Part shown: positions 5,951 through 58,718 of the stretch, piece by piece | How the letters are laid out: each line of letters begins with the position of its first letter | How positions within the stretch are numbered: the stretch's first letter is position 1 | Source: Tubulanus polymorphus | Taxonomy: Eukaryota; Animalia; Nemertea | DNA: 64,000 nucleotides | Assembly (NCBI RefSeq): GCF_964204645.1 | Contig: NC_134030.1 | Span: 18,994,210 to 19,058,209 of the forward strand | Reading direction: 5' to 3' | Program-made: the position numbers and the translations under genes | The notes under the pieces: generated by a model | The model's database searches: none | What the model saw: the letters and a program-made list of their open reading frames with translations, nothing else | What the model was told of the DNA's origin: nothing

Positions 5951-6056
5951 AAACTCTACAATAGAGTTTACATCAAAGTATTGACATTTGTTATAATTAA
6001 AGATGTCGATGATGAATAAGTATAGGGTAGATAATACTCGTTAATAGGTAGCATTA

Positions 6057-13350: not shown

Positions 13351-13397
<47 letters not shown>

Positions 13398-13446
13398 CTA
13401 CCTCTTCCTCTCTCTAATCCTCTCCCTCTCCTTCTCCGTCTCCGTC

Positions 13447-13487
<41 letters not shown>

Positions 13488-16400
13488 CTCCCTCTACCTC
13501 TTCCTCTACCTCTCCCTCTCCCTCTCCCTCTCCCTCTCCCTCTCACGGTTGTACCTCTATTCTCGTCTAACAGTTTTGCGGTAACCGATGAGATGGTGAC
13601 GCCGATAACTGAAGGTTCGACGATCGCTAAACTTATCAGCGAAAAGAGGCTTTACATCGTCGATCTGAAAATCCTCGAAGACATAAAACCAGCGGATAAA
13701 ACGAGAGTTGTAAGTTACCGATACGAAATGACATCCAGAGAAATATCTAATAATATCATACTAATCAATATTCTATTATTTCCAATGCAAATTGTCTCGG
13801 GAGATGTCCTCTTAATGACACAATACATCTGGATGATAAATTTGTGAAGGGAGCGAGTGCTGATAATATTGTCTAATAGCCTGTGATTGTACTCAATGTC
13901 GGATCAAACATGCCTCAGGCGAAGCTCTGACCATATTTGGAGGCTTTAGTCGGGCTAATCCCTTTCCAGTTGGACCGTGTTCTGACCTTCCCTATTCGGA
14001 AGATAGTTGCGAAGTTAAAATTTCACGTTCAATCGAATTTTGTCAAACAGGCAGTATCTATGGTGGCTGATAAGGGCCATAGCGTAAAATTCCTGGTATG
14101 TAAATGAAAGCGCCAGAACGCCAGAACGCCAAAACGAAAAAAACGTCCAATTTTCTCTAAAAGTTCGTTTTGGCACGCCAAAACAACGAATATTCCGTTT
14201 TGGCGCCCCGCCAAAACGAACTTACATTTTGGCGCCCCCGCCAAAACGAACTTTAAACCACGTAAAATAATTCTATACATACGTAAAATATTTTCATACA
14301 TGCAAATTTATGCAAATTACACACAAGTTCAACGCACCAAATTGAAAAATGATTTTACTGTGGTTGAATGCTTGTTTTGGCGGGGGCGCCAAAACGGAAA
14401 TAACCGCGCCAAAACGAACTTTCAGAGAAAATTGGACGTTTTTCGTTGTTTTGGCGGGGGCGCCAAAACGGAATTTTCTTTGTTTTGGCGCGCCAAAACG
14501 AACTTTCAGAATTGGACGTTTATTTTCGTTTTGGCGTTCTGGCGTTCTGGCGCCCTCATTTACATACCAGGAATTTTACGCTATGGCCCTTATCAGCCAC
14601 CATACAGATTAAATGTGAAACTGTTTTATAGTTGATCGGGCTATCACGTAGATTCTATTTTGCGGTGGATGATGATCACTTGCCCAAAGAGTTAAGGGTT
14701 TAGATCGTTTGATGCAATCGCGGCCAGGAGGTCGTCAGAACGCATACTGGGCCTTTTTCGAAATTATCTGTAGGTTGCGCCCCAGATTTCCGCATTATGG
14801 ATTGGTGCCCGTGGCAGACGCAGCATTTGTAACGATGTTCAAACTGCCCATTTATTTGGCGGGACCGTTCGTGAATTGCTTCTACCCGCGCCCTGCAGTG
14901 AATTCCTAAACACATGTCTAATGTGGACGAGCATGGAAGAGTGGAATATCGTATGGAAACCCAGGCAGCACATATTTGAAACATATTTGATCGATTTATT
15001 CAAGGCATTTATTCATTTTCTGTCAAAACTGACTTACAATCCTGATTTCAAATTTCGAAATTGATTAGAAAGTAATTTCCTCGTTGTAGCTTTGCGCTCC
15101 GATGGCCTTATTTTTTGTAAACAATGGAGGAAAACTGATGCCGCTTGCGATACAACTGTTTCAAACGCCGAGTCCGAACAACCCAGTAAGTAAAAATGAT
15201 CACATTTTACTTTTCTTTCTAACCTTCGAAAAGACGACCCATTGTCGATAGCATCCAAAGATCATTTCTAGTCAACAATTTCCCATTGAAATGAAATAGG
15301 CCCTCTGGTAAAAAGTATTGATGGCATTGCAGTTTCATTGTATGTTAACATCGTCATTTTCCCTGCAGGTCTTCCTGCCAACCGATGGACAATACACTTG
15401 GCTGGCTGCTAAAATGTGGTACAATAATGCTGATTTAGCCTATCACCAGTCGTTGACTCATTTAGGTAAGTTAAAGGACGAACTATGAAACGAAATGTGT
15501 AAATCATTGAATAGGAAATAACGTGATGTTTTGATAATAATCATCCGTCACTTCACGATAAAATGAACTACGAAAAGCCATCTGACCGTACGATGGAACG
15601 GTCTGACGTCGGCCAAAATAAGAATGGTGGATTAAAGCATCAACGAGTTCAGCCGTATAACTTGATTTTCGTTGGCTGATTTTAGAATAGTCTCAACGAA
15701 TCGGCTTAGGTAGCTCTGTATTCACCGTCTCCAGAGTTTCGCCATAGTGTGGAATGTCGACCATCCTCGCTTGCCAGGGTTTGATTACCGCCTGTTGAAG
15801 CTCACTCAATACAAACCCTGGCCAAAATTCACTGACCTATTACACCGACCACGAAATCCTGGGCGGACAGGTTCCCGGTCAGCGCCCACCAGTCTATATA
15901 TCTAGCCAATCAGATGCGTGGTATTCATAGAGAAAACGTCATGTGCCTTAAAACATCCGATTGGCTAGATATATAGACTGGTGGGCGTTGAGCGGGAACC
16001 TGTCCGCCCAAGAAATCGTGGGTGATGTAATAGACCAATAAAGGGTTTGTTGCCAGGGTTTGTGTTGGCGTATATATTGTTTTAAAGTTTTTGAAAACTG
16101 ATATATGTAACATCAGGCAGCATGAAATTCATTCCTAATTAATTGATATATACATATTAATTCTTTTTACTTGAGGTTTCACCCATTTGCTGATGGAGGG
16201 TGCGGCCATTTGTAGTCACAGGAATATATCACCGTCACATCCTGTATTCAAACTATTGGCTCCACATTTTCTAAACATCATGGCCATCAACAGGTAAAAT
16301 AACCAGTATCAGCCTACATTCAACGCCATGTTATCATCAATATAAACCGAAATCGTTAAACAAATAACAAGAGCCCAGGTCCACAGTTCTGAGTATAGAT

Positions 16401-19400
16401 TTGATACAGAGTTAACTTAAATCATCATCGAAAATGAACGTGTTTCAACTCAGAGAAACCTTCGAGAAATTTATGGAAAAGTGCCCTTTTTGCAAATATT
16501 ATTGTTATATCCTATAGAACTGCTCTTTCTGGGACCTCGCCAAATGCTACCATGTCTAACATGAAAGGTCCGCCATTAATCTTTTGTTTCAATCTGTATT
16601 TCAATTTGTATTGAGTTATATTTTGCTTGGTTTATCTCACACAGTTTGGCGTTGGAGAGATTGGTCAGTCCTGGAGGTTGGATTGACAAAACTATGACGT
16701 CTGGAGCTAGCGGTTTATTTGATATCGTCGTCAAAGCGTAAGTTTATCGACTTGGAAATAAGCCTCGAATTATAGAGCTGATGACTTCGGATTTCTTGTG
16801 TAACTTCGTGAACTCTTCCTTCAAGTGTTTCCCATGCTCTTCGGAACAAGACCAGTATAAGATAGAATTAGATGCGCTAGAACGTGGTGTCAGTAGTCCT
16901 CCAGTGGTACTAGACCGAATGATGGAGAGAGACTGGTTAAGATTCATTTAAAAGCCCCTAAACTTAATCGAAAACTTAAACTTAATCCTATACATAGCTT
17001 AGAGCCCTTCCTAGCGTAAAACTAAGTTCTTAGTTGTATAAACATATAGACTTCAAGAACGGTATGGAGCGATATTCGATCGAACTGTTCAATCAAATTC
17101 GCAATTGATAATATCTTAAGGTTTTTTCTTTTTACCATTCTTAAGTTGGAAGGATTGGAGACTCGACTTAGACGGAACGTTACCGAATGAACTGAAAAAT
17201 CGCCAAGTAAGTACACCGACACTGACTAGTCGCACACCGTCGCTTACGATCACCACGCGGTCGAAATAAGTGCATATCTGAAACCGATTGGAATACGCAG
17301 CGAGGCCCGTACCCACATCTAATCACCCGATTGTTTTTTCTTATTAACCAGGTCTACGACTCGAAGTATCTCCCTAACTATCATTATCGTGACGATGCGC
17401 TGTTGTGCTACGACGCCATCGAATCATACGTTACAGAAATCATCGATATTTACTACGGTACGTAAAACGATATGATGCGAAACGATGATATCAAGTACGG
17501 TACCGAGTTCTCCGGTAGATTGAGTCGAGGTGTTCAGTACCTCAAATAACTCTTATCGGCAGTTCATATTATTGAGCGATCTAGTTTTCTAACTACCAAT
17601 TCCGTGTCTCAAACTGCGCATGCGCGTAGGCGCTGTGCATAAAAAATATCAGTGAGATGAAATGGTAGTTAGAAAAGCTCGTTCTCCACATTGACATAAT
17701 ACGCGTATTTATTGCTACAAATATGTAATATCACATTAGTAACTTCTGTCTTCATATCTCACCTTATTGATTGAATTTCTATTTGTGTGTTTTCTGGAAA
17801 TGCTGTGTTTTCTCTCAAAATCCCGTAATACGAGTTCGAGTGTAAAAGCAGCAAAGATTATTGATTTCCCGTTGAATTAATGATAATGATAATGATAATG
17901 GTAATTATAACGATAACGATAACGATTGATAATGATGATGATAATGATAATGATAATAGCAATAGCAATAGCAATAGCAATAGCAATAGCAATAATAATA
18001 ACAACAACAATAACAATAGCAATAATAATTTTATCTCCACAATAAATAACAACTTGTCATATAGAGATATGCGAGAATATACAAATATGAAATATTTTAA
18101 CATAATGTGTTTATAATCGTTTAAATATCATCAGATTGTATCGATACGTTGAAACAAGATGAAGAGATACAGAACTGGGCGTGTGAGTTGTGTAAATCGG
18201 TGGCGGCTGGAGGCTGCGGGATTAAGGTTCGTTTGTAATTCATGTGATGATGTATACTTTACGATGGGCGACTATTTTGGCAATTGGCCAACGATACGTC
18301 GCTTCGTGCCAACAGCAATGTAATATCTAGATACATGACCGATGCACACGGTGAAAAAAAGTGCCGAAATACGAAACGGTAAAATGCGTTTATGAGTTTC
18401 GGTGATTCAGTTTGTTTAACGTTCTAACAAGAAGATTATTTCGAGAAAGAAAAATATTTTTCACCTTGTCACCTCCGAGGCTCTGTAGATTGACGATGAT
18501 GAATTTTTAATGCTGTTTTTGGGCAGAATTTCCGGCGTTAGATCCAAATCTTAAGAGCACTTTAAAAAACCGCTTTCCGTGTGCGCTAGGAAGCTTAACC
18601 ATTTTTTAATCGAACATATTTATTTTATTTTTCATTTACAGGGTGTGCCGGGCGATGGTCGTCTTGAAAACAAAACCGACCTGATATCGATATGCACATC
18701 GATAATATACATGTCAAGCGTGGGCCACGCCGCGGCGAATTTCAATCAGTATGAAGATTATGCGTTTCCCCCGAACTATCCGGCTTGCCTTCACGGTAAA
18801 CCACCTAACAATAAGGTAATATATAGCAAATCTAATGGTAGCTTGTAGATGTATTGGCGTCCCAACCGGTAAAACTCTTTGCGTTCAAATATATTGTCAG
18901 AATACTTCAAATGAAACGGTCATTTTGAGTTATAACGGCAGATTTATCTAAAATACAGCTGTTTTCTCATCTGAATGACTCCGTAGTCACGTTTTTGTAT
19001 TTTCAAAACGTCGCTTGTCCACATCCACTCGTTGTGCCTCTTCAGCGGAATGAAAGGCATTCTTTCTAAAATAAGCATTTTCTGAAGTAGATTAACCGAA
19101 AAAGATACCAGACAAAATTGGCCCTTGGTTCTAGTATATTCCGTGAAAAGATTAACATTCATTTTGTTATAATGCTAAGGAGTAATCCTTCTGGGCCCAG
19201 TTTCACGAAAAAGTTTAAGCCTAAAACGGTTAAGTTTGAATTGTTGTCCTCATTCAAAACATGAAGTAACCAACAGCAATTACACCAAAAATTTGAGTTT
19301 AACTTTTTTTGTGAAACTGAGACCAGATATTAACATTTCACTATGGTTTTTTTACTTATATTAAAATCACTCACGTTTCGTTTTCTTCGTGTAAGTTTAA

Positions 19401-22643: not shown

Positions 22644-27990
<5,347 letters not shown>

Positions 27991-32507: not shown

Positions 32508-33843
32508 ATGAAGGTTTGTACCACGAATATCAACAGGAATCAGAATTATTAGAACTGTTAGTAAACTGTAGGTCTGTGTTGTATACACATGTTCGAATAT
32601 TGGTCATTTTACAGGTCTTCGTTTTGGTTGTCGAAGTCGTGTTACTCATTTCAGGAGTAGTTTCCACCGAAGGTAAGCGAATTGGACCTTATTTGGATCC
32701 TCGTGATTTTAATTATAAAATGAAAAAAATTAAGTGTATCGAATCCGATATGTACATGTATCTCATAAATAACCAACCAAACTCTCGGTTTTCATTCCAT
32801 TCTTATCGATAATTGGTTATGTTGATAATAACGATAATTAAGCAATTACTAGAAAACGGCGTAATGTCGCGCGTGTCATCGCGATAAATTAAAAGTTAAG
32901 TTTTTCCTTTGAAGAGTGCGAGAGCTAACAAAATTCAAGATTTCCGATTGTGGCAATGAGCGAGAAAGCTGCAGTAAATCATGTACCTATCCATAACTCA
33001 AACCGGGTTTAAAAGGAAATCGCAGGTTATTCGATGTTTGTAGACCGCTAACAGCTGACTGACGCGAGGACTGAGACGTGCATGATTCACTAATGAATGA
33101 ATAGTAAATCGTGATTTTAGAGGAAAATATGTGGTGGTGAAATGGACTAGATGATACTAAAACAAAGTATCATTATCGTCAATTAAATCCTCAGAGGATG
33201 TCATAGGTGACTATAGCGCTCTACACACATCAAATAATGCCCATTTCATTAAACTTGGTCTGGGGTACGTAGGTCACTGAATGATATGATATGATATTGT
33301 GTCGGTGCACTTATTCCCGTCATTTCGTTGTTAGGCCTGAGCGGAACACGGATTAACGGGTTCCGCCCAGACAAAGCCTAATTAGTGCTCATGGTTTTTA
33401 ATTATGTTCATGTTTTGTTTATTGTAAATAGCAGCCATTATGTACAAAAGATACTAACATTTATTAAATCACTGTCAATTCTACTAACCGACTCGAAGAA
33501 TGAACAACACTGTTTATAGTCATACTGATTGCTGCCTCTCGTGTTTGATCTTGGATTATAATTATTTGTGTTACGTTGTGTATCAAAGTCTTACATCGCT
33601 ATAGTACAACGCCCGGTTAAAAACCGTTCTCCAAAACAGTAATCGAGTTGGCACAATTTGAAAACGATACTGTTTTTTTTTTCTATTTCAGAATTATCTT
33701 CTCATAGAACCAAAAGGCGTTTTCCGTGTACGTGCGCTGACGGTAAACGAGGTGTAAGATTCTATGAGGTCGGTTGCGGCAATGGATACCACAAATGTGG
33801 TTATAGATCGTACTATAACCCGACAACTTGTTGCTCCAAATAA
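32508..33843 (+). CDS. Secreted Cys-rich prepropeptide, beta-defensin fold, sea-anemone NaTx/BDS-like (71 aa, 3 exons)
   Basis: Exons 32508-32513 (MK), 32615-32672 and 33692-33843, total 216 nt. Product: MKVFVLVVEVVLLISGVVSTEELSSHRTKR-RFPCTCADGKRGVRFYEVGCGNGYHKCGYRSYYNPTTCCSK*. It has a signal peptide, a furin-type RTKR site and six Cys in a CxC-C-C-CC pattern; AATAAA at 33882. Confidence 0.85.
33330..33410. repeat. Dispersed hairpin-headed repeat; second copy at ~41268-41345
   Basis: TGTTAGGC.TGAG.GGAACACGGATTAACGGGTTCC.CCCAGAC.AAGC is present at both sites. Confidence 0.75.
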
Positions 33844-35165: not shown

Positions 35166-38100
35166 CTAAAACCTATGTACTGCATACGAATAATCAGTTG
35201 TTGTATCGTCGGTGGCGCCCCCTAATGCATATTTATCGCAGATATATTCCACAGAAGCGTAAGAATATAGTTGGACGTCATCGTCCACGCGCTCACTGCA
35301 GGTACGATTATTTCCGGCTTCCATATTCATGTACGGCGTGGTATCTTTGCCCTTTCCGGCTTCCATATTCATGTACGGAGTGGTATCTTTGCCCTTTCCG
35401 GCTTCCATATTCATGTATGGAGTGGTATCTTTGCCCTTTCCGGCTTCCATATTCATGTACGGAGTGGTATCTTTGCCCTTTCCGGCTTCCATAATCATAT
35501 ACGGACTTGCAACGTTGCCCTTTACGGCTTCCATATTTATGTATCCAGATGTATTTATGTTGTTATCAGCCTCTGAACTCCCGGCCTCGAAATCCAAACG
35601 CGGATTTGTATCTTTTTTTAAGCTTGTAACATTCGGAATGGTTTGCAGTAATCCGGCCTCGGTATCTGACTCGATGTCGTCGTCCAAAACCTCATAGACT
35701 TCGTCTACCTCCAGCGGTTGCTGCTGATTCGTAGTCGGGGCTGTATCCTCCACGCGACCTTTACCGGACTGTCGTCTGCGTCTGAAAAATGTGTTATTTT
35801 GCGCATGAAAAAAAGGAAAATGCTGATCGTAAAATGAAGCCATTTTTGTAATTCATTGTGTAAGACCTTAATAATGACCGATCGCCTCTAAAGATGAAGA
35901 ACTTCTCCAAAACATCAGCTAACAACTAGGCAATCTCATAGGATCTGCTAACAACTATACTGGTGGCTGCCAAAATTCGAACTCTCTCCCTCTCTACTCG
36001 TTTCCCAACTTAACTACTCTCTCGCTCTACCAAGTTTCAACCACGTGATCTCTCCCTACCAAATTTAGTGTGGTTTCTACAGAATCTGCAACCTCCATCA
36101 ACCACTCTCCGACTAGAAATATATTTCCAACCACCAACACTACATACCAAGTTTCCGAATCATGTTTCTGAATTACTCCCTTAGACTAAGCTATTTACAT
36201 TTCTTGTTTTCTTCGTTAAAACCAACTATTCACATTTAATCATTATTTTTATATGTTATTTGTTTCCCCAGACGTTATTAATATTTATACCATAATTTGA
36301 GTAACCCTAGTCAACTATCAATTGCACGGTTAAAAGAAAATCCCGGATAGTTTGGAATCGGTCCGGGTTAATTAAGTCATCTAGATGTGAACACTCGTAA
36401 ATCTGCCCGGTTTATTCAGCCTCGAACTAAAAGGATTTCTATAAAATTCAGCTGAGTGTATACCTGCATATGATGATAACAACGATGATAATGATGAGGA
36501 GAAAACCGGTCGCTCCACCAGCGATGTAGCCAATCATCGTACCCCAGTCACGAGTGGTCCGGTTACTGCTCTCCGATTCTGTCGGATCGACGCGGTCAGT
36601 CTAAATGAAACGAACAAGTTTCATTATCTTGACATAGCTGTCAGGGAAGATAATATTCGCACTAGTTATGGTTATAACAATTATAAGATAGGCTTGAACC
36701 AAAATGAACGCGTATCATCAATATACTAGACGATTATATAGTTTAAAATACACTTTTGTATCAACCTGAAAGCAGTTTCTTAGTGATTGTGATGTTTTTA
36801 TTTGATTGTGCCACGGATGTAGATATACCATAGGCCTACTTAGATATTTCAAATGAGATTTTGATTATATCTTCAATTCTTACTAACCTCGTATTTCGAG
36901 CCAACTTTTTCTACATTCACCAGCTTGATTCTGAATGATAAAGACAAACTTACACTCGAATCAAATCAAATTTACAGCATACAAATGACAATGCATGACT
37001 GGCGAACGAGCGAATCGAGTGAATGACTTTATTCGTTGCCCAACTTCATAATCATAATTTAATTCTCAGTTATCGACTTAGCAGATAGTAGAATGATAAC
37101 CGAAGTCGATGCCCTATTTCTTAATGCATAATTAGTACGAAGACTCCCTTCTGAGATGCGAGTACTTAATTTCTAACATTTTTAGAGCTAAAATCTAAGA
37201 TTTAAGAGCAGTTTAATCGAGTCCGTGATTAATTTAATGATACGAACGAGGATTGCCAAACAGAAGGGATTTCTCAACAACGTAAAGATCTTTATCTTGC
37301 CCCTGAATATCTGACGTCTCTTTTGACAGTTAATAATGTTAAATGAAATGGACACTGACCCCGATTCAAAGATTGCAGTTTGTGTCCTGTTTGTTGAGGG
37401 ATCTACAAAAGAAAAATAACTAGACAATTACGTTCACTATGGATGGGTTCGATTTCTCTTTGCAATGATTGTTCTTTTTTTTTAGATAAAAGTAACCGAC
37501 TATTCTGTCCTAGAAAAAATACACTGAAAGGAGCTACTGGTACAAATTAGCGCGAAACCAGTGAACTTGTAACTTCTCATCGAGTTTATTTGTTTAGGTA
37601 GCTGAATGTGGGCATATTTCATCTTATATATTTTCTTTTCTAGGGCTGCTTTCTAGTATAAGCTAACTGTTGCTTCAAAGCAGTCCCTCATCTAATATTA
37701 TTATAATTTTAATGTATTTGTTTATCCATTAATTCTGTAAAAATGTTACATGAAAATCAAATCAAATCAAATCAAATCGCATAATTGCATATTACCATTC
37801 GTCGTTATATTAACTCCCGCCGTCGGCCGTACGCTGGCGCCATCTTTATGCGCGAGATGATCTTTGAAACCTACGTTCGAAAATGAGTGAATCAGTTAAC
37901 AATTTTCCTGAGTTCGAACGATAAGCAAACGTCACCAACTCATACTAAAGTCACCGTCTTGGATAGCGCCTCGGTGTGACAATGTCATCCCAAATCAGGC
38001 GTGATACAAGATGGCCGCGTTGATGTGAATTTCAAGTTTAATTTTGACGTACTAGGGGGCGTGACAGTAGGATTAGAAAGTATCTGTACATCACCGCCAT

Positions 38101-39663
38101 ACATCCACCTCTCGTCACAACTGAATGTGTAAACGACTTCGGTTCCATTCACAATTCGCATAAATTCAATCTAAAATGATGCATTCATTAAATATAACAA
38201 TAATGAACTTAAAATGAAATCGTGAACGTCGAGTAATTAGTAAGTTAAATATCTGAAATAAAATGTCAGGGTTTGAACAATGAAAATCAAATCTACGGAA
38301 AGCTATGATTTTGGTTCGTTGCGTTCGCATTTCTTATCAATTCCATCTAAAATGAAGCATTCATTACACAAACAATCAGTGAATAATGAACGTATTCGCG
38401 GAGGCTGAATAATTCGATTGATAGAATTGTGTAAAAATGTTGATAATAATTATCTTATGTTTGGGTTTTCAATGATAAAAATCTGACGTGTGGGATGATC
38501 TATCTCTGGGTTATTATCCTTGTTCAGCTTATTGCTTATTGCTAATCGCATTTAGCTTATTGATACATAGGTTAGCGTGGGTCATGAAATAACGGCGGAT
38601 CCCTCGATGTTTGACTAAATTGGATCGTGTCGAACATACCCCGCTAGAGACCGAAATGTGCCTACCTTTTGTGGTGCCCAAGCTTTGTCATAAATAGAGA
38701 AATAGGATTCCACTTTCAATACGACCTTTTCAGGAATACTTATGTCCTTGGCCCGCAGTAACCACATCTTGTATGTGTTTCTCTTAAACGTGGCATCTTC
38801 CAGATGTATTGTCGTGTTTTCTGTATTTCTGCCGGTCATTTTTATGGAAACATGTCCCGTGAATCCTCCAAAATTCCAGTTTCTAGTGTATGCAACTAAC
38901 GTCCAATTTACTGAAATTCAAATCAGCTATATTTTACCAAAACCTATTATGACGGGACAGCCATTTAAATCTCAATTACTTAGTTGCAGTCCATTCCTAA
39001 AATCATTTCTGAATAAGAAAACTAAAACTAAGTTTATTGACGCCTCGTAAAATAACACATATAATTGCTTAAAATTGTCGATGATAAAAGTTATGATATG
39101 AATTACGTAAAATTAAGGCTCAATAAAGTTTATTTTTGGATTGAAATATTGATAATTGAATTGACTTGACCGGCGACCAGTATTGCCTCGATATATTGAT
39201 AAATTATCTTGTGCATATTTTGAAAAGATACCTCTCAATTTATATTTGATGAATTTCAATAATCATAAAATTATTTGATTACATAACATACGTTAAAATT
39301 CACAATTGATCTTGTTATTTTGAAACACCAAATATTGATGACGTCGTGTACATCCAATCACACAGAACCCCTTGAATAACGCATACTAGGTATCAATGTA
39401 TGTAAACATAATTGTAACGGTTTTTACTGCGTCAAAAAATTTTCCATTTTGAGAGACAAATTGATATATAGAAATATATTCCCCAATAATTATAAACTCT
39501 TTAACTCTGAGCCGTCAAACCATATCTATGATTGCTTTGCGTATTGGATACCTCCGATCAATTTGAAAAATACATTATCGGTCCCGAACTTACCGGGTCT
39601 GCTTCTAGAAGCAGTTATGATTAAAAGCCAGATAAGCAGCCCTGCGCAAACCCTCCTATCCAT
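35166..39663 (-). CDS. Type I membrane protein: signal peptide, PLAT/LH2-like domain, S/T stalk, TM, and cytoplasmic tail with tandem YxxM motifs (~448 aa, 8 exons)
   Basis: Exons 39663-39594 (MDRRVCAGLLIWLLIITASRSRP), 38910-38666, 38170-38053, 37870-37796, 37402-37360, 36930-36888, 36600-36464 (TM IGYIAGGATGFLLIIIIVVIIIC) and 35781-35166. Total 1347 nt, in phase. PLAT-like pattern: WTLVAYT...GGFTGHVSIKMTG...FKRN...KDI...W..QKI...YTFSCDERW. The two 43-nt stalk exons are the least certain part. Confidence 0.78.
35313..35545 (-). repeat. Coding 42-bp minisatellite (EAGKGKDTTPYMNM)n
   Basis: Four near-identical units and two diverged ones in the last exon of the PLAT receptor. Confidence 0.92.
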
Positions 39664-42454: not shown

Positions 42455-45400
42455 TCAGCGAGTTCTCCAAGCTCGTTTGCTTCTAGCTCGTATTGATTTC
42501 ATATCGATAGTGAGGATGGTGTAAAGAAGTGGATTCAGTGACGAGTTGATCGGTAGGAAAAGTACCGCCAACCAAGCCGCCACTTGGTTCGGTATCTCGA
42601 CTCGGAATACAGCGCAAAACTGAACGATAATTATCGGTAACCAGCAAAATAGATTACAAAGATTTATCACTAAACTCCTACGTGCCAGAATCAATTCGGT
42701 AGGATCAGCTCTCCCCGAGCCAGACCTGCTTCCAGATACTAGTCTATACATATGTGCATACGTAATTAAAATTGTAGCGAGTACGGCCGAGTTAAACACG
42801 GCAAAAATAGCGAATGAGTATTGCCAGGCGGGGACATCGATGGTTATAAAATTCATAGGTAGACAAACCCCAGTTGCACCGTAAAAATTGTTTCCGAAGT
42901 AAGAAGATGACGATAGCGGTAGCAACGAAATGATAAACAAAATGATCCAACATACACAGCACATGCCGGATACCGAATTCGAAGACATAATTGGGCTTCC
43001 AGAAAATGGGTCGACGATATTCGAGAATCTTTGACGCGTGAGCATGAGGAGAAATGTCAGTGATCCCTCACACGAAATAGTCACTATAATCCCAGCGAGT
43101 CGACACAAAGAACTATCTGTCCAACTTTCAGAATTTAGGAAATAAACACCTTTATAAACATAATCAGCTCCGGCGATCACAAAAAGATAAATCGACATGA
43201 GAAAATCGCAAGTGGCGATATTAATGATGAGGATATCGGAGCAAGTGTTCCTTGATTCAGAGGATGCATTTCGAAATGCTTGAACGCGAAGTAAAATAAC
43301 AAAGCTGTTCGCAAAAAAGCTGAATGATGCGATTGCCCAAATTATTGCCCTAAGAACAGTGTTACCCATCAGGTCGGAACAAGATGAATATTGATCAGCT
43401 TCTGGTTGACACCGTCTAATATTCGGAACCATGCACCAAAATTGGTACGCATCAGAAGCCAAAGAACTCAATAAGGTTAGACTGTCAAAAACGTTTCTTT
43501 CTACGGAGATAACTCTAGAATTTTTGGTTAGATCAAGATTTCTAAGTTTCATCAATCCGAAAAACGTGTTTGGTGAAATATACCTGATTTTGTTGCTGCT
43601 GATATTTAGCGACTCCAAAGCGGATAGACCACTAAATACATTTCCCTCGAGTAACGATAAGAACAGCCCGTGAAGGTCTAGATCACGTATCGACTTTAAC
43701 CCTTAAAAACTGCCTTCTTCTGAATATCTCACTGGATTTCCAAAAAGCAAGAGCGCTTGTAAGCTATACAAACCGGCGAATGTATTCGCGGACAACGTAG
43801 CTAAGCGGTTATATGTAATGTCTAATGTATGTAGATTATACAGGTTTGAAAACGCATTCGTAACAATGTGAGACAAATTGATGTTACGTGATATATTTAA
43901 GAAATGTAGATAGTAGTACGAATAAAAGGTGTAATGATTGATTTCAACTCGGTTTCCTGATAAAATCAGAACTCGAGTTGATGCCGAGAAAAGATCAGTA
44001 ATTTCTCCTAAACCAGCATCATTACAGTCAATTAAATGGCCTTGGCATTCACAACTATTTGGACACGTGACATCACAGAAAGATTCATAATCCGAGTTAT
44101 GTTTACAATTTACAACACCATCACAAACTTCAGATTGAGGTATACATCGGTCTTCCTGACCACATTTGAACATACCAGGACATGATAAAGTCTGACAGGT
44201 TCGCTCGTCTTCTGAATTAGGACAATCGGATCGACCATCGCACACCTGTCCCGTCGGTATACAGTAAGATGCTGGACATTTAACAGTACCAGCTGGACAT
44301 TGGAAATCAGTACAACCTCGTATGTGTTCGAGCCTTCTACATATGGGATGACCTGTTGGCATTCGTTCTAAAATACATCTGTGACGTCTAGAATAACAAT
44401 GAGGAGATTCAAAAGAACATCTTTGTTCATCAGATTTCTTACACGACAATGTTGTGAAATTAGTCATACAGTAGTTCTCTGTAGTGCACTGATTCTCAGG
44501 GTTAACAGTTATATTTGTGTCTATCTCATCTTCTTCGAGGTCCCCACCACAATCTACAACACCATCACGATACAATAGAGAACTGATACATTCACCATTT
44601 ACACACAGAAACCCGTTACATTCATCTGAAGAGCAGCCGATCTCATCGGATTTATCTTTACAATCAACCAGTCCATCACATCGATTTTATTTACCCACAC
44701 ATTGTCTATTTTTGCACTTAAACTGTTCAGTGGAACACATTATGATAGCACGAGTTCTCATCTGATCCGTCAGCGCAATCTCGGACAAAATCGCACAAAT
44801 TACTCACTGATATAACCTGTCCATCTGGACAGTGGAACTGACTCTGTAAGTTTGAACCCGAACAATCGAGTTCATCTTCACCGTGTTGACAGTCGTTTCT
44901 GGTATCACATACGCGATGGCTACTGATACATCTTTGGTCGTTGCATTGAAATTGCCACGATTTACAACCACTTACAGAGCCTAACTCTTTACTAGTTACT
45001 TTATTGGCACAAAGCACAGAATGCGCTACATCTGTGACATTATAGAAATCTGTCACTGACCATTCCACTGATTTGATATATGTTATCTCATCCCTGGTTA
45101 CGATTGGTGTGATAGCGAGAATACCACTATTCGCAGCCTTTGCCAGTATCGCACCATATTGAAATTTGTAATGGAATGTTTGAATCAAATGATCAATTCT
45201 CAATTCATTGGATATCATACCTATGTCACCGCCGATTGTAACACACATTTCCTCAGCTCTCCGAATTGACAATCTCTGAGTATCCCAAGCTGTAAGTATC
45301 TGATAGCAATGTCCTTCTATACCAATCCACCCTCGTAGACACGTTGAGTTACCTACTTCAAATGTCTGAGAATAATGACTCTTGTTTCCCCTCGAAACAT

Positions 45401-45623
45401 TAAATTGCTGATTATTAATAGTTGTGTAGTTATTTGTGTCTGTTTCACAAATAAAAGTCGTGTGAGTCTCCTCGATTTGACACGGGAATCGAACCCAGTT
45501 CGCTGAACCTCGTGGACTATTCAGTATCATCGCCGTACACGGCATATTGACGTCATTTATCGGTTGTGTTCGTAGAGGAGATATCAATCCTTGAATATAT
45601 TCTGGTATCGTTTCGTTTATCAT
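42455..45623 (-). pseudogene. GRL101-like LRR-containing GPCR (C-type lectin, LDLa repeats, LRRs, 7TM); intronless and disrupted
   Basis: CTLD-like segments (CLRGWIGIEGHCY, NWVRFPC...FICE), several LDLa units (CDGRSDCPNSEDE), LRRs, hinge SSCSDLM, and 7TM with GVCLP, CWLP, PINSSLNPLLY. One frameshift at ~44740, TAA at ~44688 and an in-frame TAA at 43703-43705. The 5' end is missing at the minisatellite. Confidence 0.88.
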
Positions 45624-50320: not shown

Positions 50321-53300
50321 TATACATGAACTCTTCTTTTTGACACTTGATTCTTGTTCTCCTTTTTATTGTGAAAAGCCAGTAATGTCATCAATATATA
50401 AAGATTAAAATTGAATTGACTTGAACTGTTCAGGTTTGAGCCCAACGCACACGTACAGGACCCGATAAACATAGAAACATTGAAACGCAGAAACAAACGT
50501 GTACGAAACCATGTTTTTCAATTTTTCGAAAACGTCCACGACACAGAGAATCGATCGAAATATTTTTCGGTCACCTGCTCTGCGTTTCCCTGCATCGTGT
50601 TCATTGGGCTTAATGGTGCAAGCGCAGCGAGTGGCACACGTAGAAACGAATGCTCATGGCACACGTATACCGATACACGAAAGGGAAAGCCTTTTCTGGA
50701 GTCTTTCGTCACTTGCGTTAATCCGAAACACGGTTTGCCGACGATCAGGTGGTTTCGAGATTCACTAAAACGTTGTTTCGCGTTCGTAATGTTTAGAATA
50801 GAAAAACAAGAAAAGACGCGGACACGTGAATGTCGCACTCAGATTTGTATATTTATACGTAACTTCTATCATAAAGTGAATGCGCGGAGAACGTATTTGG
50901 TAATCGTCAGCTCCTCAAACCTAGGTATTAACCCACTAGACACCGCGACTTCATGTTCCTGAACAACAAACGCTCAATTAGCCAATTTAATTTGCATATA
51001 AAGATAAAGATCAGTAGAGATGCGGTGTGAAAACTACTGATGCATTACAACCATTGGTTGAATCTCTATCGCTGTATAGATTTGGTCAATCATTGGTTAA
51101 AAGTTTGACCTTTGACCCCCTCAAACTATAGGTGGCGCTATAATACAGCGGACGTTTTGCGGAGATACAAGTTGAACGTCGACGGACATTCTGCGGTCTA
51201 ATGGGTTTTAAAGCAAATAGAAATATAATTCACATTAACTAAAACATGCCAATTATGCATTTCTGAACAAAGCCTAATTCTTTAAATCATTGGAATACAT
51301 AATGATTTCTATCTATATGTTTTATTTAGATATTAGAGATTGCTTATTATAACACCAGGAAGATATACAACGTGTCCAATACTTGACCATATTTCAACAT
51401 TGTAGGAATTCGTTGGCGCTGTCTGACAGTAAGGTTCATTCAGCCACAGATAGAGGTATTGAGGTCGTTAGTAGAAATCTGGACAAACCCTTTGATTTGA
51501 AGTCGACATTGTACCTGATGGTTTTCAACGTCATCTGCGACATGATGCTAAACAAACAGTAAGCCGCTACTGCTATGCACTAATATATTCACAAAACGTC
51601 GCACTTAGAAATATTAACGCTTATTGTGTTTGCTTGTTTTTTAATGGGGTAACGGCACCGCTACTGTGGCAATCGAGGATTCCACGTATGGCAGGTGAGG
51701 ATCCGCCAGGTTCGCTAGTGGTTACTCGGTCACTGCGCTTCAATTTCTTCTACATGTCAGTTTATATTAGAATCCATTCATTTAATTAGTAAATCAAATT
51801 CCAGTAGAACTGTACCATAATACTCTTCGGTAACGTTAATCTTGTATATATGTGGTATCTTGATGATAGGTAAGAATATCTAATGGTATCCTAAATAAAT
51901 TTGGTTAAACCTTATTTATACAGGATATCATCAGAAATTCATACCTATCATCAAGGTGTGAATCGATAATCAACAGGAACATAAACTTTATGTTTCTGTT
52001 CATTATCGATTCAGACCACGCATCGAACGTGACCAGTTCACCAATTGGTTTTTCTCTAAGGTTTGAAGCGGATGATCAAGAGTTTGAAGATTTATACCGA
52101 TCCATGGAGGCGTTGAGCGAAATATTCGGAAATGTCGGCGTACTAGAAGACGTCATACCTCTGATGAGGTATATACCGTACAAGATACCATCGACTAGGA
52201 AATTCATCGAACATTATCACCACGTTCTCGAGTTTTTGAGAAAGAACTTTTGCGAACATGTTGATAATTTCAACCGCGGTAAGACAGATGTTCAATTATC
52301 TGGGGCCAATTTGTCAAAACGTTCGGTAGAGTCAACCAGTGAATAGTTGACGTAGTGATAACTTACAGTCCGTTGTTGCTATGGTATTTTTATCCGCCGG
52401 TTATCTTCGACCAGCTTTAGGGCAAATGACCCTGCATCCAGCTCCACAGTTCTTAAATTTACTCCGAGTTAAAATAAACTCATTTTCAATGAGTTAACTG
52501 AGACAAATGTTAACTCATAACAGTGGAACTGTGGATTCTGGAGTACCAAATTCCACCGTAAATGGCGTTTGAAAAAGTGCTATTTTTTCGCCCTCCGGAT
52601 TCGCCATAACTTTTCCAAAAAAAACCTTACAATATTTTCCATATTATTTCAGTCTTAATGTTCCGTTGCATATAATCTGAAAGAACAGTTTTATACGCAT
52701 TTCCCTTATCATTTGAGTTCAATCAAATATTGGTTTTTTTCATTTTTTATTGCCGTAAGTGAAAGAGATTAATGTGTATGGAATTTAAGATCGAATTCCG
52801 AAATTGTGTTCGAGCGTTTTCTTATTTCTTTGCAGAAAATCTAACGGATATCACGGATTATCTGATAGAAGCGAGAGAAAGAACTCGTGATCGTGATCCA
52901 AAATTAGCAGATGATTTCAGCGATAGACATCTGGTTCAAATCCTCAACGATATTTTTGCAGGTAGATTGCGTCATAACCGATTTATTTATCGACATATTT
53001 TAATTTTGGCCTACATGTCAATTTCCCATCGGTCACCTTAGCCGTGGCCACTCGGAAAGGATTTGGCCCGGGCCAAATAGGCACGGATCAGGCTCGAGCC
53101 AATTTTGGCCTGTGCCTAATAACTGAGCGCACTCAAACACAAACCACTCACTCGATGCTAAACAATGCTCAGCCGCTCGTGTGATCGCGGCTCTTGGTGA
53201 AGGTTCTGGGAACTGTCAACGTCGTTTTAAGTAACTTCACCGGGTGATTCGGACCCGCCATTTCTCAGTTTTGAGTGAAACGGGTTTTTCACTAAGTCCC

Positions 53301-55051
53301 CAAACATACGTCATCAGATAATTTACGTCGACATGTCGCGAAATATCGCGTCATGTACTCACGATATGTCGACAGGTTCATGTCTACTTGACGCGATATA
53401 TCGCGATATGTCGACATCAACAAGGCGACTTGTTGAGTTGGAACGCGACGACTGGAAGCCCCTAAAAATAAGTACGCACTAACGGCGCTTGATGTGTTTT
53501 ATCTCTGAATGGAGCTCACATGTTCACAGTTTCGTGTTTTTTTTAAAGCTGGGATTGACAGTCCTAGCCAATCGTTGAACTGGATCATGTATTTTCTGGC
53601 AAAATATCCCGAGGTACAGAAGAAAATTCACGCCGAACTTGATGAACATATCGGTATGAAATTTCGCTAATAATATACGTACTTTAGTTTAATTAAGCTA
53701 GTATTCTACATCTGGTTTCCTATATCTTGTCGACAGGAGCACGACGCTTGAAAATGGCCGATAAACAGCAATTAGTCTATTGCGAAGCAGTGATGTATGA
53801 AGCGATGAGGTTGTGTCCTGCTGCACCTTTAAGCGTACATTCAGCCGCGTGCGACGTACAACTAGGTAAGATGAAACGCAAGCAATGTCCGTCTAGTTTC
53901 TTCGGACATCGGATCTAGCGACACAGTGTTACCTCACATCTGTAAATGTAGGTCACGTGGACTACATCCTCGCTTGCCAGGGGTCCGTTATCGCTCCCCG
54001 ATAACTCGCTTCCGCCACATTCCCCTGGCCTCACGAAGCGTGATTTCATTACTGGTGCATGACGTCATATATCGATTTGCGAAATACTTCCTTGTTCGGT
54101 AAAACGTTTGCTGATTGGTCCATTTAACGGGAATTCCAACAGCAGCCTTAATGTCGTTTGTTACAAGCACTGTGATTGGTACGACCGGATTCTGGTCGGC
54201 TAATAACGACTCCAACGACTCGTGAGATCAATGGGTTCGGGGAACAGATTTAGCTAAGTGGGTTCGAATCCCAGGACGGGTGAGGATGCGTGGACTAGGT
54301 CATGAGTCAAATTAAACCTTCCACAACCGTGGAACTGGATATGTAGACGTCAAATTAAACTAATTGTGAATCTGAGGCCTAAATCGACAGTTGAACACGG
54401 CATAAGTCAGTGTAGACTTGAATCCAGAGTCAAATTAAACTGGAACTGGGTCAAAAGTCTATTTAAACCTACATAACTGTGAACAACGTAACACGTTTCA
54501 GAATAAAATCCATTTTATTTTAACGTCTAATTGGAAGTAAACACACATTATTGTCAATGGAACTTGTCAAATTAAACCCGATTGAAGCTACACAGCTAAG
54601 TCTTGATTGGATTAATGTGATATTATCTGTCACCATTATAACATATAAGTATTATGTGATGCTGATTCGGGATCATTTCTGTCTATTTGCAGACGGTTTT
54701 GACATTCCTAAAGATAGTCAAGTTTGGGCGAACCTCTACGCTTGCCACCACGACAGCCGGGTCTGGGACGACCCGGAATCGTTCAAACCCGAACGGTTCA
54801 TTCACGCTGATGGGAAGTTGGTAGCTCGCCCTAAATCGTGGTTACCGTTTGGCGCCGGCCGTAGATCGTGCATCGGTGAAAACGCCGCCAGACAACACGT
54901 GTTTCTCTTTTATACGAGCCTGATGCAGAAGTTCAGTATTCGATTTCCGGACGCCAGTCCCATGAAAACGTCACCGCTAACTTCTGATTTCGTAGACAAC
55001 CCGTTTTTCTGCAGGTCGAAGCCATTCGATCTGATTATCAGTGAACGATGA
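46959..55051 (+). CDS. Cytochrome P450, clan 2 (CYP17/CYP1-like), 10 exons, 500 aa
   Basis: Exons 46959-47085, 48109-48192, 48278-48382, 49935-50031, 51406-51558, 52061-52278, 52836-52961, 53549-53653, 53737-53865, 54693-55051. Total 1503 nt, in phase. N-terminal anchor plus LPLGPKGYPFIGN, WKLMR, I-helix AGIDSP, EAMR, FKPERF and heme motif PFGAGRRSCIG. Confidence 0.95.
48881..48922 (-). ncRNA. Degenerate minimal type I hammerhead ribozyme (Penelope-like relic)
   Basis: Minus strand reads ACAC-CCGGCGA-T-GATCTC-TAGGGT-GAGATC-GAAAC-GTC-GTGT. Stems I and II pair, GAAAC and GTC are present, and the core has two mismatches to CTGANGA. Confidence 0.55.
49425..49860 (-). mobile_element. L2-type LINE 3' fragment
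   Basis: Minus strand encodes LWNSLPKHIREGESILIFKK, then an AAAGCGCTTTGAG...TAGCGCTTT stem-loop and a (TTA)n tail. Confidence 0.7.
50254..50319. repeat. (TA)n microsatellite
   Basis: Read directly from the sequence. Confidence 0.95.
50932..51205. mobile_element. piggyBac-like MITE in P450 intron 4, mirrored from ~63717 to the window end
   Basis: TTAA|CCCACTAGAC ... GTCTAATGGG|TTTTAA. Confidence 0.6.
53965..54288. mobile_element. Non-autonomous DNA element with 9-bp TSD (MULE-like); mirrored at ~59486-59815
   Basis: CGTGGACTA is duplicated at 53956-53964 and 54289-54297; termini CATCCTC...GAGGATG. Confidence 0.8.
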
Positions 55052-56267
55052 AGGACAAAAAACGCGAAATTCAATTTTGATTCACTTAATTAATATCAAT
55101 TTCACTAATTTACTGTGGTTGCTGTTTTCATTCAAAAATGCTTGGTGTGCAAACTTTTTTCTCATTTCACATACGTTTTTAATGGACGCGAATTTAATGA
55201 TTACGACACACAATGTTTAGTGGTTAGAGGGTTTAATCTTAGTTAACTTTTAGGTGGTTAGGTAGAATGTGTTCGTCTTGTCTCGTTTTTATTCCAGGAA
55301 TTGTTCGCTATGACCCTTATGCGCCTCCATACATACAGAATATACATGTATGAAAAAACTGACACGATACACAAACCATACAAATAACAGACTCACAAAT
55401 TAAAACATATTTAGAATTTATTATTATCATTTGAAAATATGATTTCCTTTTAAAAGATTTACATAAAATTCTACTAGGATTACATGAAAAAGCTTGATTT
55501 AATTTGTCGCTTGGAATGTTAAAAATTCCACCATATGAAAAGCTCACCATAATAAGAGCATTTATAATATAAGTTACCTCCACTTGATTCCAATGATAAG
55601 GCAAAATTCCAATAACAATCTTAAAAATAAAATGAATGCATTAAATTTCCTCAAACAGTCATTTAAAAGCAATGAACCCTTTGAAATACTGAATTTTTCA
55701 GACATGTTTATTATACTATACCTCGTGTGTGGATCGGGGAAGTTTGTGCGAAGAATGGGTGTGTGTATTGTGGGTGCTTCACTTAATTTCCTTCATTTGA
55801 TATCGGCACATTTTATACTCGTATTTATATTCATGTATAAATATTATGTTATAAAATGTTTCGATTACTTTGAAAAATAAAGATTATTATTATTGATATT
55901 ATCATTATTATTATTATTCACTGGTTTCGCGGGTATTATTATTCGCGGGTCGACTGAAGTATGATTCACCATACAATCCAACATCTTCCTCAGCGCCTAG
56001 GATTACGCGTGGAGCAGTATTGGATGAGTGCTGCCCCCTAGAGGTGTTAGGTTGCTGCCTGCCGGGGTCTGGTCGCAACATGTTGTCGATTCGTGCGTAG
56101 ATTGTCTCATCTTCACCGATATCCTGAAATAGAATAATGCTTATGATATCCTTTCTAAATGTATGCGGATATCTAGAACCAGTCTGGACCCTGCACCCAC
56201 TCAGCCGGGATGCCCGCAGATTGACGTGGTCGTTCCAGGCTTGTTATAGATTGTTGTTTACGGGGAA

Positions 56268-56913
56268 CATCCTACTGTACGACTAACGCCAATGAGAGCT
56301 TTACCTCCGGGTCGAAGATGTCTGTGAGCGCCTGCTATAAACCGCCCTACTGCTTCGTACCCAGCGTCGACCATACTCAAATCAGGGAAGTGTGATGAGA
56401 CACACTTCACACTCATCACACTTCCCTGCTCAAATCTAGCACCGTTAACTTACTGACATCTTCAGCATCAGTCGGTAGATAGAATAACGGATAATCCCAG
56501 AAAATCAAATCGAGTTTCTCGTCTTCGGCAACACAGTTGAATACATCGGAATATCTTACCTCTCCAGGGACGTTGTAACGATTGAAGTTGTAACGGGTGT
56601 TGTCCAGAGCTCGACGATTTATATCGGTAGCCAAAACATAGCTCAAATTTGTTTTATTGCGTAGATACAACGCTGATACAACCGGTTCCGCATTTCCGCT
56701 ATTTCCAAGAATCTAGCACCGGTTTGAGTTGCTTCTGGTCAATTTTCGACAAATCCCTCGATTCCGTCCATGTAGAAGACGCCTTTGAAATTCACGAATT
56801 TGTGGTCGCAAAGCGTAAACTCGACTTGTCCCCCCCCCCGACTCCGCGATAGCCAGCTGTCGTTTTGTTAAACCCGCTTTGCGATCTTCATATAGCTTCA
56901 GTTTGGCTTCCAT
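56268..56913 (-). pseudogene. Intronless class I SAM-dependent methyltransferase (HemK/PrmC-like), disrupted and 3'-truncated
   Basis: Reconstructed motifs: GVFY, RFLEI..CGTGCIS, VLATDINRRALDNTRYN, VRYSDVF, DLIFWDYP, VDAGYEAVGRFIAGAHRHLRPGGKALIG. Lesions: C10 run at 56830-56839, TGA at 56739-56741, indels around motif I, and a 46-bp insertion. Confidence 0.82.
56383..56428. mobile_element. 46-bp mini-transposon (17-bp perfect TIR, 7-bp TSD) inserted in the methyltransferase
   Basis: CTCAAAT|CAGGGAAGTGTGATGAG-12nt-CTCATCACACTTCCCTG|CTCAAAT. Removing the element and one TSD restores LDLSMVDAGY. Confidence 0.88.
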
Positions 56914-58718
56914 TTCGAGCGATAGTTTTTTTCGACCGTATACAGACGTTTTTAGAAATTGTACAATGATAATTTACAATTATTTTTCATGATTGATAAA
57001 ACCCGTCTCGATCTGCATGAGTGTATAGCATAGTATAGTATAGTATATTTCGCCGAATAGATTGATACACAGATAAGCCTATGTAATTATACTTCAATAT
57101 GATACGAAACAGTATGAACATATCATATCAATCATTGTAGCAATAGATTATGCGAGGAATTAGGCCAAGTTGGCTTAAACTAGTCCAAATCCCTCGTCCA
57201 TTCGCTGCCTCATACCGTATAAACCCTCATGTGCACACGTTACCAGACATTTAGGATACATAGGTTCTTCCACCAGTTCCACCTATTCAACCCGTTCCAC
57301 CTCTTCCACTCATGTCTGAGGTTTCTGATGTCGGTTTCATTGAAGGAGGTGCGTGCACTGTATCTCACGTCCAGAGATACCGCAATCCACTTAGAGAATT
57401 CTCTAAATTAATAATCGCAATCTTTTTTTTAAAATTCTTTTGTAGATGAGAACAGAGAACATGGCGCCACGACTGATCGCGTTTATGTTGAGGTTTGTGT
57501 CAAACCAGGCTAGAACTACTCATTCCCCCGTAAACAACAATCTATAACAAGCCTGGAACGACCACGTCAATCAGCGGGCATCCCGGCTGAGTGGGTGCAG
57601 GGTCCAGACTGGTTCTAGATATCCGCATACATTTAGAAAGGATATAATAAGCATTATTCTATTTCAGGATATCGGTGAAGATGGGGCAATCTACGCACGA
57701 ATCGACAATATGTCGCGACCAGACCCCGGCAGGCTGCAACCTAGCACCTATAGGGGGCGGCACTCATCCAATCTGCTCCACGCGTAATCCTAGGCGCTGA
57801 GGAAGATGTTGGATTGTATGGTGAATCATACTTCAGTCGACCCGCGAATAATAATACCCGCGAAACCAGTGAATAATAATAATAATGATAAGATCAATAA
57901 TAATAATCTTTATTTTTCAAAGAAATCGAAACAGTTTATAACATAATATTCATACATGAATATAAATACGAGTATAAAATGTGCCGATATCAAATGAAGG
58001 AAATTAAGTGAAGCACCCACAATACACACACCCATTCTTCGCGCAAACTTCCCCAATCCACACACGAGATATAGTATAGTAAACATGTCTGAAAAATTCA
58101 GTATTTCAAGAGTTCATTTTTAAATGACTGTACGAGGGAATTAAATGCCGTGTTCGATTTTTAAGGTTGCTATTGGAATTTTGCCATATCACTGGAATCA
58201 AGTGGAGGTAACTTATATCATAATGCTTTTATTGTGGTGAACTTTTCATATTTTGGAATTTTTAACATTCCAAGCGATAAAATAAATCCAGCATTTTCAT
58301 GTAATCCTAGTAGAATTTTATGTAAATTTTTTAAAAGGAAATCATATTTTCAAATGATAACAATAAATTCCAGATAAGTTTTAATTTGTGAGTCTGTTAT
58401 TTGTATGGTTTGTCCATCGTGTCAGTTTTTTTTCATGTATATTCTGTATGCTTAGGGTCATAGCGAACGATTCTTGGAATAAAAACGAGACAAGACGAAC
58501 ACATTCTACCTAACGACGTAAAAGTTAACTAAGATTAAACCCTGTAACCACTAAACATTGTGTGTCGTAATCATTAAATTCGCGTCCATTAAAAACGTTT
58601 GTGAGATGAGAAAAAGGTCCGCACACCAAGCATTTTTGAATGAAAACAGCAACCACAGTAAATTAGTGAAATTGTTATTAATTAAGTGAATCAAAATTGA
58701 ATTTCGCGTTTTTGTCCT

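Follow-up and report, generated by a model that had tools for sequence, protein, structure and literature searches.

A predicted receptor gene of the nemertean Tubulanus polymorphus that combines a PLAT ectodomain with the tandem YxxM tail of an immunoglobulin-receptor family

Gene structure, protein layout and splicing

The gene LOC141907020 of the nemertean Tubulanus polymorphus was analyzed within a window of 64,000 nucleotides (C6:18,994,210-19,058,209 of a 268 Mb assembly). It was found to encode a predicted single-pass receptor in which an extracellular PLAT domain is joined to the transmembrane segment and tyrosine-rich tail of a local immunoglobulin (Ig) receptor family. The gene model comprises eight exons on the minus strand (39663-35166); all introns are of the GT-AG type, the phases are compatible and a frame of 448 amino acids is open up to a single stop. 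The frame obtained by joining the exons is identical in every letter to the protein XP_074652659.1 (Tubulanus polymorphus, uncharacterized LOC141907020), referred to here as P0012. Exons were searched singly, and the domain-level searches and folds used the database protein. The features of the gene, in positions of the window, are:

39594-39663, minus strand: exon 1, phase 1, start codon and predicted signal peptide; PLAT-family origin
39010-39447, no strand assigned: high-copy dispersed repeat in intron 1; many contigs match at 72-77% and the depth is very high
38666-38910, minus strand: exon 2, residues 24-105, which make up the first two thirds of the PLAT domain; outside the coverage of the spliced run X2
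38053-38170, minus strand: exon 3, residues 106-145, with the last third of the PLAT domain, an NGT sequon and the FxC..W motif
37796-37870, minus strand: exon 4, first stalk exon, phase 1-1; the last exon of PLAT-family origin; missing in a variant
37403-37795, minus strand: intron 4, phase 1; putative fusion point of the PLAT-family and Ig-family halves, with a 163-bp high-copy repeat at 37616-37778
37360-37402, minus strand: exon 5, small stalk exon, phase 1-2, with an Ig-family pattern
36888-36930, minus strand: exon 6, small stalk exon, phase 2-0; Ig-family origin
36464-36600, minus strand: exon 7, end of the stalk, single transmembrane segment (about 36466-36534) and juxtamembrane Cys; Ig-family origin
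35166-35781, minus strand: exon 8, RRRR, the entire cytoplasmic tail of 204 amino acids and the stop; Ig-family origin; missing in a variant
35685-35696, minus strand: Y273 (YEVL), an acidic tyrosine close to the membrane that has a counterpart in 16 of 16 family proteins
35311-35543, minus strand: 42-bp tandem repeat (5.5 copies, 92%) with six YxxM motifs spaced 14 residues; Tyr codons at 35543, 35501, 35459, 35417, 35375 and 35333
35175-35267, minus strand: C-terminal tyrosine cluster YSYASV, VEYI and DYSYAV; YSYATV in paralogues

The N-terminal hydrophobic signal-like segment of P0012 is retained in three paralogues. It is followed by an ectodomain with six NxT sequons, a stalk containing 25% Ser/Thr and one transmembrane segment (Kyte-Doolittle peak 2.97), followed by RRRR. 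All of these elements had been listed in a preliminary description of the locus and were recovered at the same positions on the minus strand. The tail, which had been given as about 200 amino acids with six YxxM motifs plus VYEVL, LYSYA, VEYI and DYSYAV, contains each of them. P0012 is predicted to be single pass, to lack a catalytic domain and to carry tyrosine motifs in its tail, as in non-catalytic tyrosine-phosphorylated receptors; the kinase-less tail and the type I topology proposed before are supported by the sequence.

Contigs of run X2 skip the introns 35781/36464, 36930/37360 and 37870/38053 exactly, with CT..AC on the plus strand, and loose ends of these contigs match the join of exons 6 and 7. 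One spliced contig, with a depth of 115.2 at each joint, passes from exon 3 to a variant exon 5 and then to exon 6. Because the introns are skipped exactly, splicing connects the 3' third of the PLAT domain with the stalk, and the stalk in turn with the transmembrane segment and the tail. The eight-exon splicing postulated in the preliminary description was therefore found in X2 contigs from exon 3 to the stalk, membrane segment and tail, with exons 1 and 2 uncovered; their joining to the rest of the gene is based on the intron phases and the RefSeq model.

The PLAT ectodomain and the YxxM repeat tail

Residues 23-142 of P0012 matched PF01477 with 27.6 bits (cut-off 23; E 5.3e-6), and the PLAT domain of the paralogue P0017 reached 35.3 bits on the same profile. 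Only the isolated domain passed: PLAT was missed in the Pfam search with single exons, including exon 2, and with the whole protein, and a phmmer search of the single PLAT domain against PDB gave no match. At the structural level, the Atlas's own model of P0012 matched PLAT domains with a template modelling score of 0.77-0.85. An AlphaFold2 model of the domain was obtained with a predicted local distance difference test score (pLDDT) of 94, the input alignment containing PLAT rows. Compared with rabbit 15-lipoxygenase (1lox), it gave a Z of 15.1 and a root mean square deviation of 2.3 over 110 residues, and the top ten rows were all PLAT. The models confirmed the PLAT fold predicted for residues 24-140, so that the structure check suggested together with the idea of a PLAT ectodomain bore it out.

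The PLAT core is kept in P0012 (T, G, F, W and FxC..W). Six columns that hold D or E in 64-89% of 36 other PLATs are occupied by T, K, K, Y, Q and Q, and they are also non-acidic in all three aligned paralogues, giving four receptor PLATs. The net charge of the receptor PLATs ranges between +2 and +7, and the median of the other PLATs is -3. The six lost columns presumably include calcium ligands. Since all six acidic consensus positions are lost, calcium-bridged membrane binding in the manner of lipoxygenases appears unlikely for the P0012 domain. Calcium-dependent membrane binding through the PLAT loops has been documented in some lipoxygenases and is not universal (PMC7436259). Aromatic loops are present (W35/F37 and Y93-Y97), and the ligand may be an anionic surface or a protein. 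The lipid or membrane sensing proposed in the preliminary description may be one option for the ligand.

The YxxM set of the tail consists of YINM, YMIM and four YMNM at Y324, 338, 352, 366, 380 and 394, accompanied by YEVL, YSYASV, VEYI and DYSYAV. Against six motifs observed, 0.70 were expected, and none of 20,000 shuffles reached six; these are not independent events, because all six come from one 42-bp tandem repeat. With the immunoreceptor tyrosine-based activation motif (ITAM) defined as Yxx[IL]x6-9Yxx[IL] and the inhibitory motif (ITIM) as [ILVS]xYxx[ILV] (bioRxiv 10.1101/2022.03.04.482883), no strict ITAM, ITIM or immunoreceptor tyrosine-based switch motif could be found in P0012, nor an ITAM or ITIM in P0017 or P0018. 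By its motifs, P0012 is classed as not being an ITAM/ITIM receptor.

In 111 distinct repeat units of the family, the consensus was determined to be YMDM/YIDM. D was found at position +2 in 81 units (73%) and N in 26, the Tyr was retained in 89% and Met at +3 in 85%, and Met or Ile stood at +1 in 92%. At this Tyr, replacement changes were less frequent than synonymous ones (12 vs. 43). The resemblance of YMNM to CD28, to which the preliminary description had given weight, is weak in view of this consensus; the CD28-like YMNM (with the Grb2-type YxN) is a local variant of one tandem repeat that was spread by repeat homogenisation. The YINM of DAP10 and the YMNM of CD28 bind p85/phosphoinositide 3-kinase (PI3K; PMC5852076), and Grb2 binds YMNM (PMC5068240). 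A p85 gene (SH2-iSH2-SH2) is located at C2:27.96 Mb of the Tubulanus genome, in which about 55 SH2 exon matches were detected.

Two parent families, variant forms and neighbouring genes

Four relatives of exon 2 were found in the genome, on C11 and C8 (57-59%) and as a pair on C3 (25%). The tail exon 8 gave 82 matches at roughly 40 loci, mostly on C6 (17.5-22.8 Mb) and C9. In most of the retrieved tail-family genes the ectodomain is encoded by another exon (66 matches in the genome), which folds as an Ig domain (pLDDT 86; the top 50 Foldseek matches are Ig-fold by title); the P0012 locus was absent from the genome search with this Ig exon. The tail is therefore not particular to the PLAT receptor: it belongs to a family with about 40 loci, most of which are Ig receptors, and the gene is chimeric.

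In the exon-by-exon comparison, exons 1-4 resemble the PLAT genes (z 4-43) and have no match among the Ig genes, whereas exons 6-8 match Ig genes (up to z 19) and have only a weak likeness in the transmembrane segment to the PLAT genes. Exon 1 reached z 18 against P0017, the PLAT protein of C8, and less than 2.5 against Ig receptors, and its DNA is a 74% match to the C8 gene. For exon 4, z was 4.4 and 6.4 against the PLAT-family proteins P0017 and P0018, and for exon 7 it was 10-16 against six Ig receptors. The phases and donor of exon 5 are as in P0008 and P0015 and its DNA gave z 8.4 against the Ig gene L036; its protein match to the Ig family, taken alone, was not significant. Non-coding DNA divides in the same way: the C11 copy, which is the nearest relative of the PLAT half in non-coding DNA, matches the 5' flank as well as introns 2 and 3 (z 6-10; intron 3 z 10), and exon 5 with its flanks (z 8) and intron 5 (z 12.5, C19 Ig gene) match Ig genes. 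The phases of exons 5-8 (1-2, 2-0, 0-2, 2-end) are those found in the P0002/P0008/P0015 Ig subfamily; in the PLAT genes, by contrast, the transmembrane exon begins in phase 1. In a tree of the transmembrane segment and proximal tail, P0012 sides with the Ig subfamily having two small stalk exons (support 100/99).

These comparisons indicate that the gene is an exon-shuffled chimera, with exons 1-4 and the 5' flank derived from a PLAT family of five loci and exons 5-8 from the Ig-receptor family. Signal, PLAT and first stalk exon replaced the signal and Ig exons of an Ig receptor within the span of the C6 Ig cluster, and the switch point is placed in the phase-1 intron 4 with its 163-bp high-copy repeat. 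The C3 and C8 PLAT genes have in common another transmembrane segment and an A-x-YSEV motif, and carry other tyrosine tails; for this reason the window gene is taken as the derived form. The exons are 68-78% identical to both parent families and most introns are no longer alignable. Since it has diverged from both parents, the fusion is old.

Extracellular PLAT receptors form a small family in this genome (two genes on C3, one on C8 and the window gene). The earlier suggestion of a PLAT-only immunoreceptor without precedent holds insofar as no described one was found, but the gene is not alone in its own genome. The C8 gene L028 (C8:15.41 Mb, protein P0017) is a second PLAT receptor with a tail containing YSEV, YVND, six NxxY, four YEP repeats and YAEL. 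Eight remoter PLAT exons are present on C8 at 0.9, 3.1-3.5, 4.1, 9.4 and 16.0 Mb, and seven of the eight share the exon 2 profile span (positions 2-89); they probably point to a larger extracellular-PLAT family. For the C11 PLAT copy, no convincing transmembrane segment was detected within about 16 kb downstream, and a candidate glycosylphosphatidylinositol (GPI)-anchor exon was dropped as no canonical acceptor was found. On the tail side, P0006, P0010 and P0011 (C6) have the same transmembrane segment and tail below a third type of ectodomain, in which a weakly Ig-like domain is combined with unassigned beta-rich segments. Broken tail copies are present in the Ig/YxxM family, and L038 (C11:11.417 Mb) is an orphan repeat-tail fragment that adjoins an unrelated gene and has no transmembrane exon upstream.

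Runs X1 and X2 both contain a variant absent from the assembly, at about twice the reference depth in X1. One variant contig skips 34796-36444, by which the tail exon is removed, and an X2 contig at the depth of this tail-less variant has exon 6 spliced to exon 7 and continues past the exon 7 donor. The deletion would give a tail-less receptor, possibly a decoy allele or an unassembled copy. In the X1 variant, 37455-37936 is deleted, which removes exon 4 and appears to keep the reading frame; in a variant spliced contig of X2, exon 3 is connected straight to exon 5. The fusion junction is also spanned by a DNA-like contig in which 37937 is followed by 37454. Among the best-supported 40 of 142 variant differences, seven lie in exon 3 and result in five amino-acid changes and no silent change. 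The variant of higher depth was not placed in X1 over most of exon 2 (38714-38900) at 90% likeness, and the X2 depth is nil there; exon 2 may differ strongly from allele to allele, or have been filtered out. The proposed survey of paralogues and polymorphism thus yielded PLAT and Ig-tail kin as well as variants. A second near-identical assembly copy that could explain the variant contigs was not found (the first search scored 40 of 1377 candidates).

At 9461-18848 (plus strand) the window contains a lipoxygenase gene that has a canonical PLAT exon of its own and is not close kin of the receptor PLAT. Derivation of the receptor domain from this gene, 14-29 kb away, was rejected, as it is absent from the kin of exon 2 and of the subfamily profile. 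A two-exon gene at about 32589-33843 (plus strand) has an intact frame for a secreted peptide that includes a KR site and whose mature part contains six cysteines (CxC...CC); the peptide resembles sea-anemone defensin-fold toxins and gave no match in the Pfam search. The window further contains an intronless frame of 887 amino acids for a secretin-family (adhesion-type) G protein-coupled receptor (25327-27990, plus strand) and an LDLa-LRR rhodopsin-type G protein-coupled receptor over three frames (42455-45623, minus strand), for which short introns or frameshifts are possible. A pair of near-identical cytochrome P450 genes in opposite orientation was found at 51990-62114, and a broken element of the long interspersed type, with a gag-like first open reading frame and pieces of endonuclease and reverse transcriptase, at 3166-7529 (minus strand).

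Proposed function and alternative explanations

The preferred interpretation, to which we assign a probability of about 0.6, is that the gene encodes a functional type I, kinase-less tyrosine-motif receptor which arose by exon shuffling and signals through p85/PI3K. A ligand bound by the PLAT domain would cluster the receptor, and a Src-family kinase would phosphorylate the acidic Y273 and the repeats. The tandem SH2 domains of p85 could then dock on pYxxM pairs spaced by 14 residues and activate class IA PI3K, and Grb2 might bind in addition at five YxN sites. In this scheme, a PLAT-type ligand would trigger the activating output of the Ig family, probably for recognition of an immune type or for uptake.

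Several points weigh against this interpretation. The splice evidence consists of X2 contigs from one study, and no run is recorded as RNA. Exons 1 and 2 are almost without depth in X2, although gaps in such coverage prove nothing, and introns 1, 2 and 4 lack a splice joint among the X2 joints listed. In the tree, P0012 sits on a long branch (0.79). Within the repeat unit, Pro, Ala and Lys are conserved like the Tyr, and the units are not independent; because these flanking residues are also kept, the conservation of the units lends modest support to selection on the YxxM motif. The immune role is drawn from analogy, and phosphorylation, binding and localisation are predictions.

The YxxM motif also doubles as a YxxPhi sorting motif. 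In an endocytic or scavenging receptor, the unphosphorylated array would provide YxxPhi signals for AP-2, the PLAT domain would capture lipoprotein, lipid particles or secreted proteins, and PI3K would be uninvolved or secondary. All eight YxxL/V/M sites fit YxxPhi, and the C8 relative has six NxxY motifs, another signal of the uptake/PTB type. Secreted lipases bind lipoprotein and partner proteins via PLAT, and the LPL-GPIHBP1 entry 6oau is among the fold matches of the P0012 domain. However, the units keep Met and not any bulky residue at +3 (85%), with Met/Ile at +1 (92%), which is the p85-type pattern, and up to 19-34 units in paralogues seem excessive for sorting, so that we consider this role unlikely. 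A receptor for a protein on other cells, in self/non-self recognition or adhesion (allorecognition, gamete, neural), would use PLAT as a generic beta-sandwich in place of Ig. The loss of all six acidic columns in four of four receptor PLATs, protein binding by the PLAT of Rab6IP1 (3cwz), the amino-acid changes caused by the listed exon 3 differences and the precedent of the clustered Hydractinia Alr genes, which are invertebrate Ig-superfamily receptors with tyrosine motifs (bioRxiv 10.1101/2022.03.04.482883), are in line with this. It is nevertheless judged rather unlikely: the gene is single copy in the assembly, a list of 40 of 142 differences precludes a selection test, and aromatic loops and positive charge also fit membrane binding.

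The gene could also be a tolerated by-product of rearrangement in an unstable cluster, transcribed without a selected function and with repeats growing by slippage. Its lineage restriction, the variants lacking exon 4 or the entire tail and the broken tail copies of the family would fit; yet after an old fusion all eight exons still share one open frame, canonical splice sites, sequons and fold have been preserved, and even the exon-4-less variant appears to be in frame, which makes this distinctly improbable. That two adjacent genes were joined by an assembly or annotation error is extremely improbable. The high-copy repeat in the junction intron and the absence of an intron 4 joint among the joints listed might suggest it, but the spliced contig of depth 115.2 spans exon 3 to exons 5-6, the DNA-like contig from 37937 to 37454 crosses the junction, and the 393-bp intron 4 showed no Ig exon and no further signal exon.

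A p85/PI3K-coupled receptor of this kind can be compared with known systems. CD28, ICOS and DAP10 are likewise single-pass without a catalytic domain, and YMNM/YINM are identical to the motifs of CD28/DAP10 (PMC5852076, PMC5068240); P0012 has six repeat-derived motifs instead of one, no PYAP/PRRP and no homology, the likeness being a convergence of four residues. Because its ectodomain is PLAT and not IgV, P0012 is placed outside the CD28 family. With the Tubulanus Ig/YxxM-repeat family (P0001-P0016) it shares homologous exons 5-8, stalk, transmembrane segment, acidic Tyr, the 14-residue repeat and the YSYA[ST]V end, and its exon phases are those of the P0002/P0008/P0013/P0015 subfamily. It differs in having signal, PLAT and stalk exons instead of signal and Ig, and YMNM instead of YMDM units. 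P0012 thus appears to be half a member of this family, by its transmembrane and tail exons and not by an Ig ectodomain. The fold is that of the PLAT/LH2 proteins (lipoxygenases, LOXHD1, polycystin-1, lipases, alpha-toxin C-domain and Rab6IP1; Z 12-15), but here PLAT is the sole ectodomain of a predicted type I protein, carries sequons, has lost the six acidic columns and is net positive, whereas the PLAT of polycystin-1 is cytosolic.

Receptor domain swapping has precedents in CEACAM3 (PMC2110893) and amphioxus FrLRR (PMC10199209). CEACAM1 and CEACAM3 carry related ectodomains on different signalling tails through domain exchange (PMC2110893); the Tubulanus PLAT ectodomains are only 37-63% identical, the receptors lack a strict ITAM or ITIM, and of the properties of paired receptors only related PLAT ectodomains with different tails are shown here. 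FrLRR is an exon-shuffled invertebrate receptor acting via Grb2, but unlike P0012 it is GPI-anchored and has no tail (PMC10199209). The Alr tails use ITAM/ITIM, and Alr proteins are without PLAT. Among about 250 PLAT proteins (profile and word searches of limited sensitivity, favouring multi-PLAT proteins), no receptor with signal peptide, PLAT and transmembrane segment was found outside Tubulanus polymorphus, and an Atlas search for relatives of P0018 returned nothing. In the literature, no paper was found on PLAT-ectodomain receptors or on nemertean Ig receptors.

To our knowledge, PLAT has been described as a cytosolic module for docking to membranes or as an additional domain of secreted enzymes, but is not known to serve a signalling receptor as its sensing domain, and nemertean immunity is almost unstudied. 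What is new is the predicted PLAT ectodomain on the YxxM-repeat tail of an Ig receptor, a layout for which no description was found in the literature. A tentative and doubtful extension is that PLAT serves as a pattern-recognition module in ribbon worms, in a paired set of YSEV-tailed C3/C8 genes, the PI3K-activating window gene and a polymorphic tail-less decoy, and would read anionic membranes of microbes or dying cells independently of calcium. The locus represents a spiralian swap in which a sensor domain was placed on an existing tyrosine tail; the breakpoint is mapped to a phase-1 intron and both parent families are present in the same genome. It allows asking whether vertebrate-style YxxM/PI3K signalling and paired-receptor logic may operate in nemerteans.

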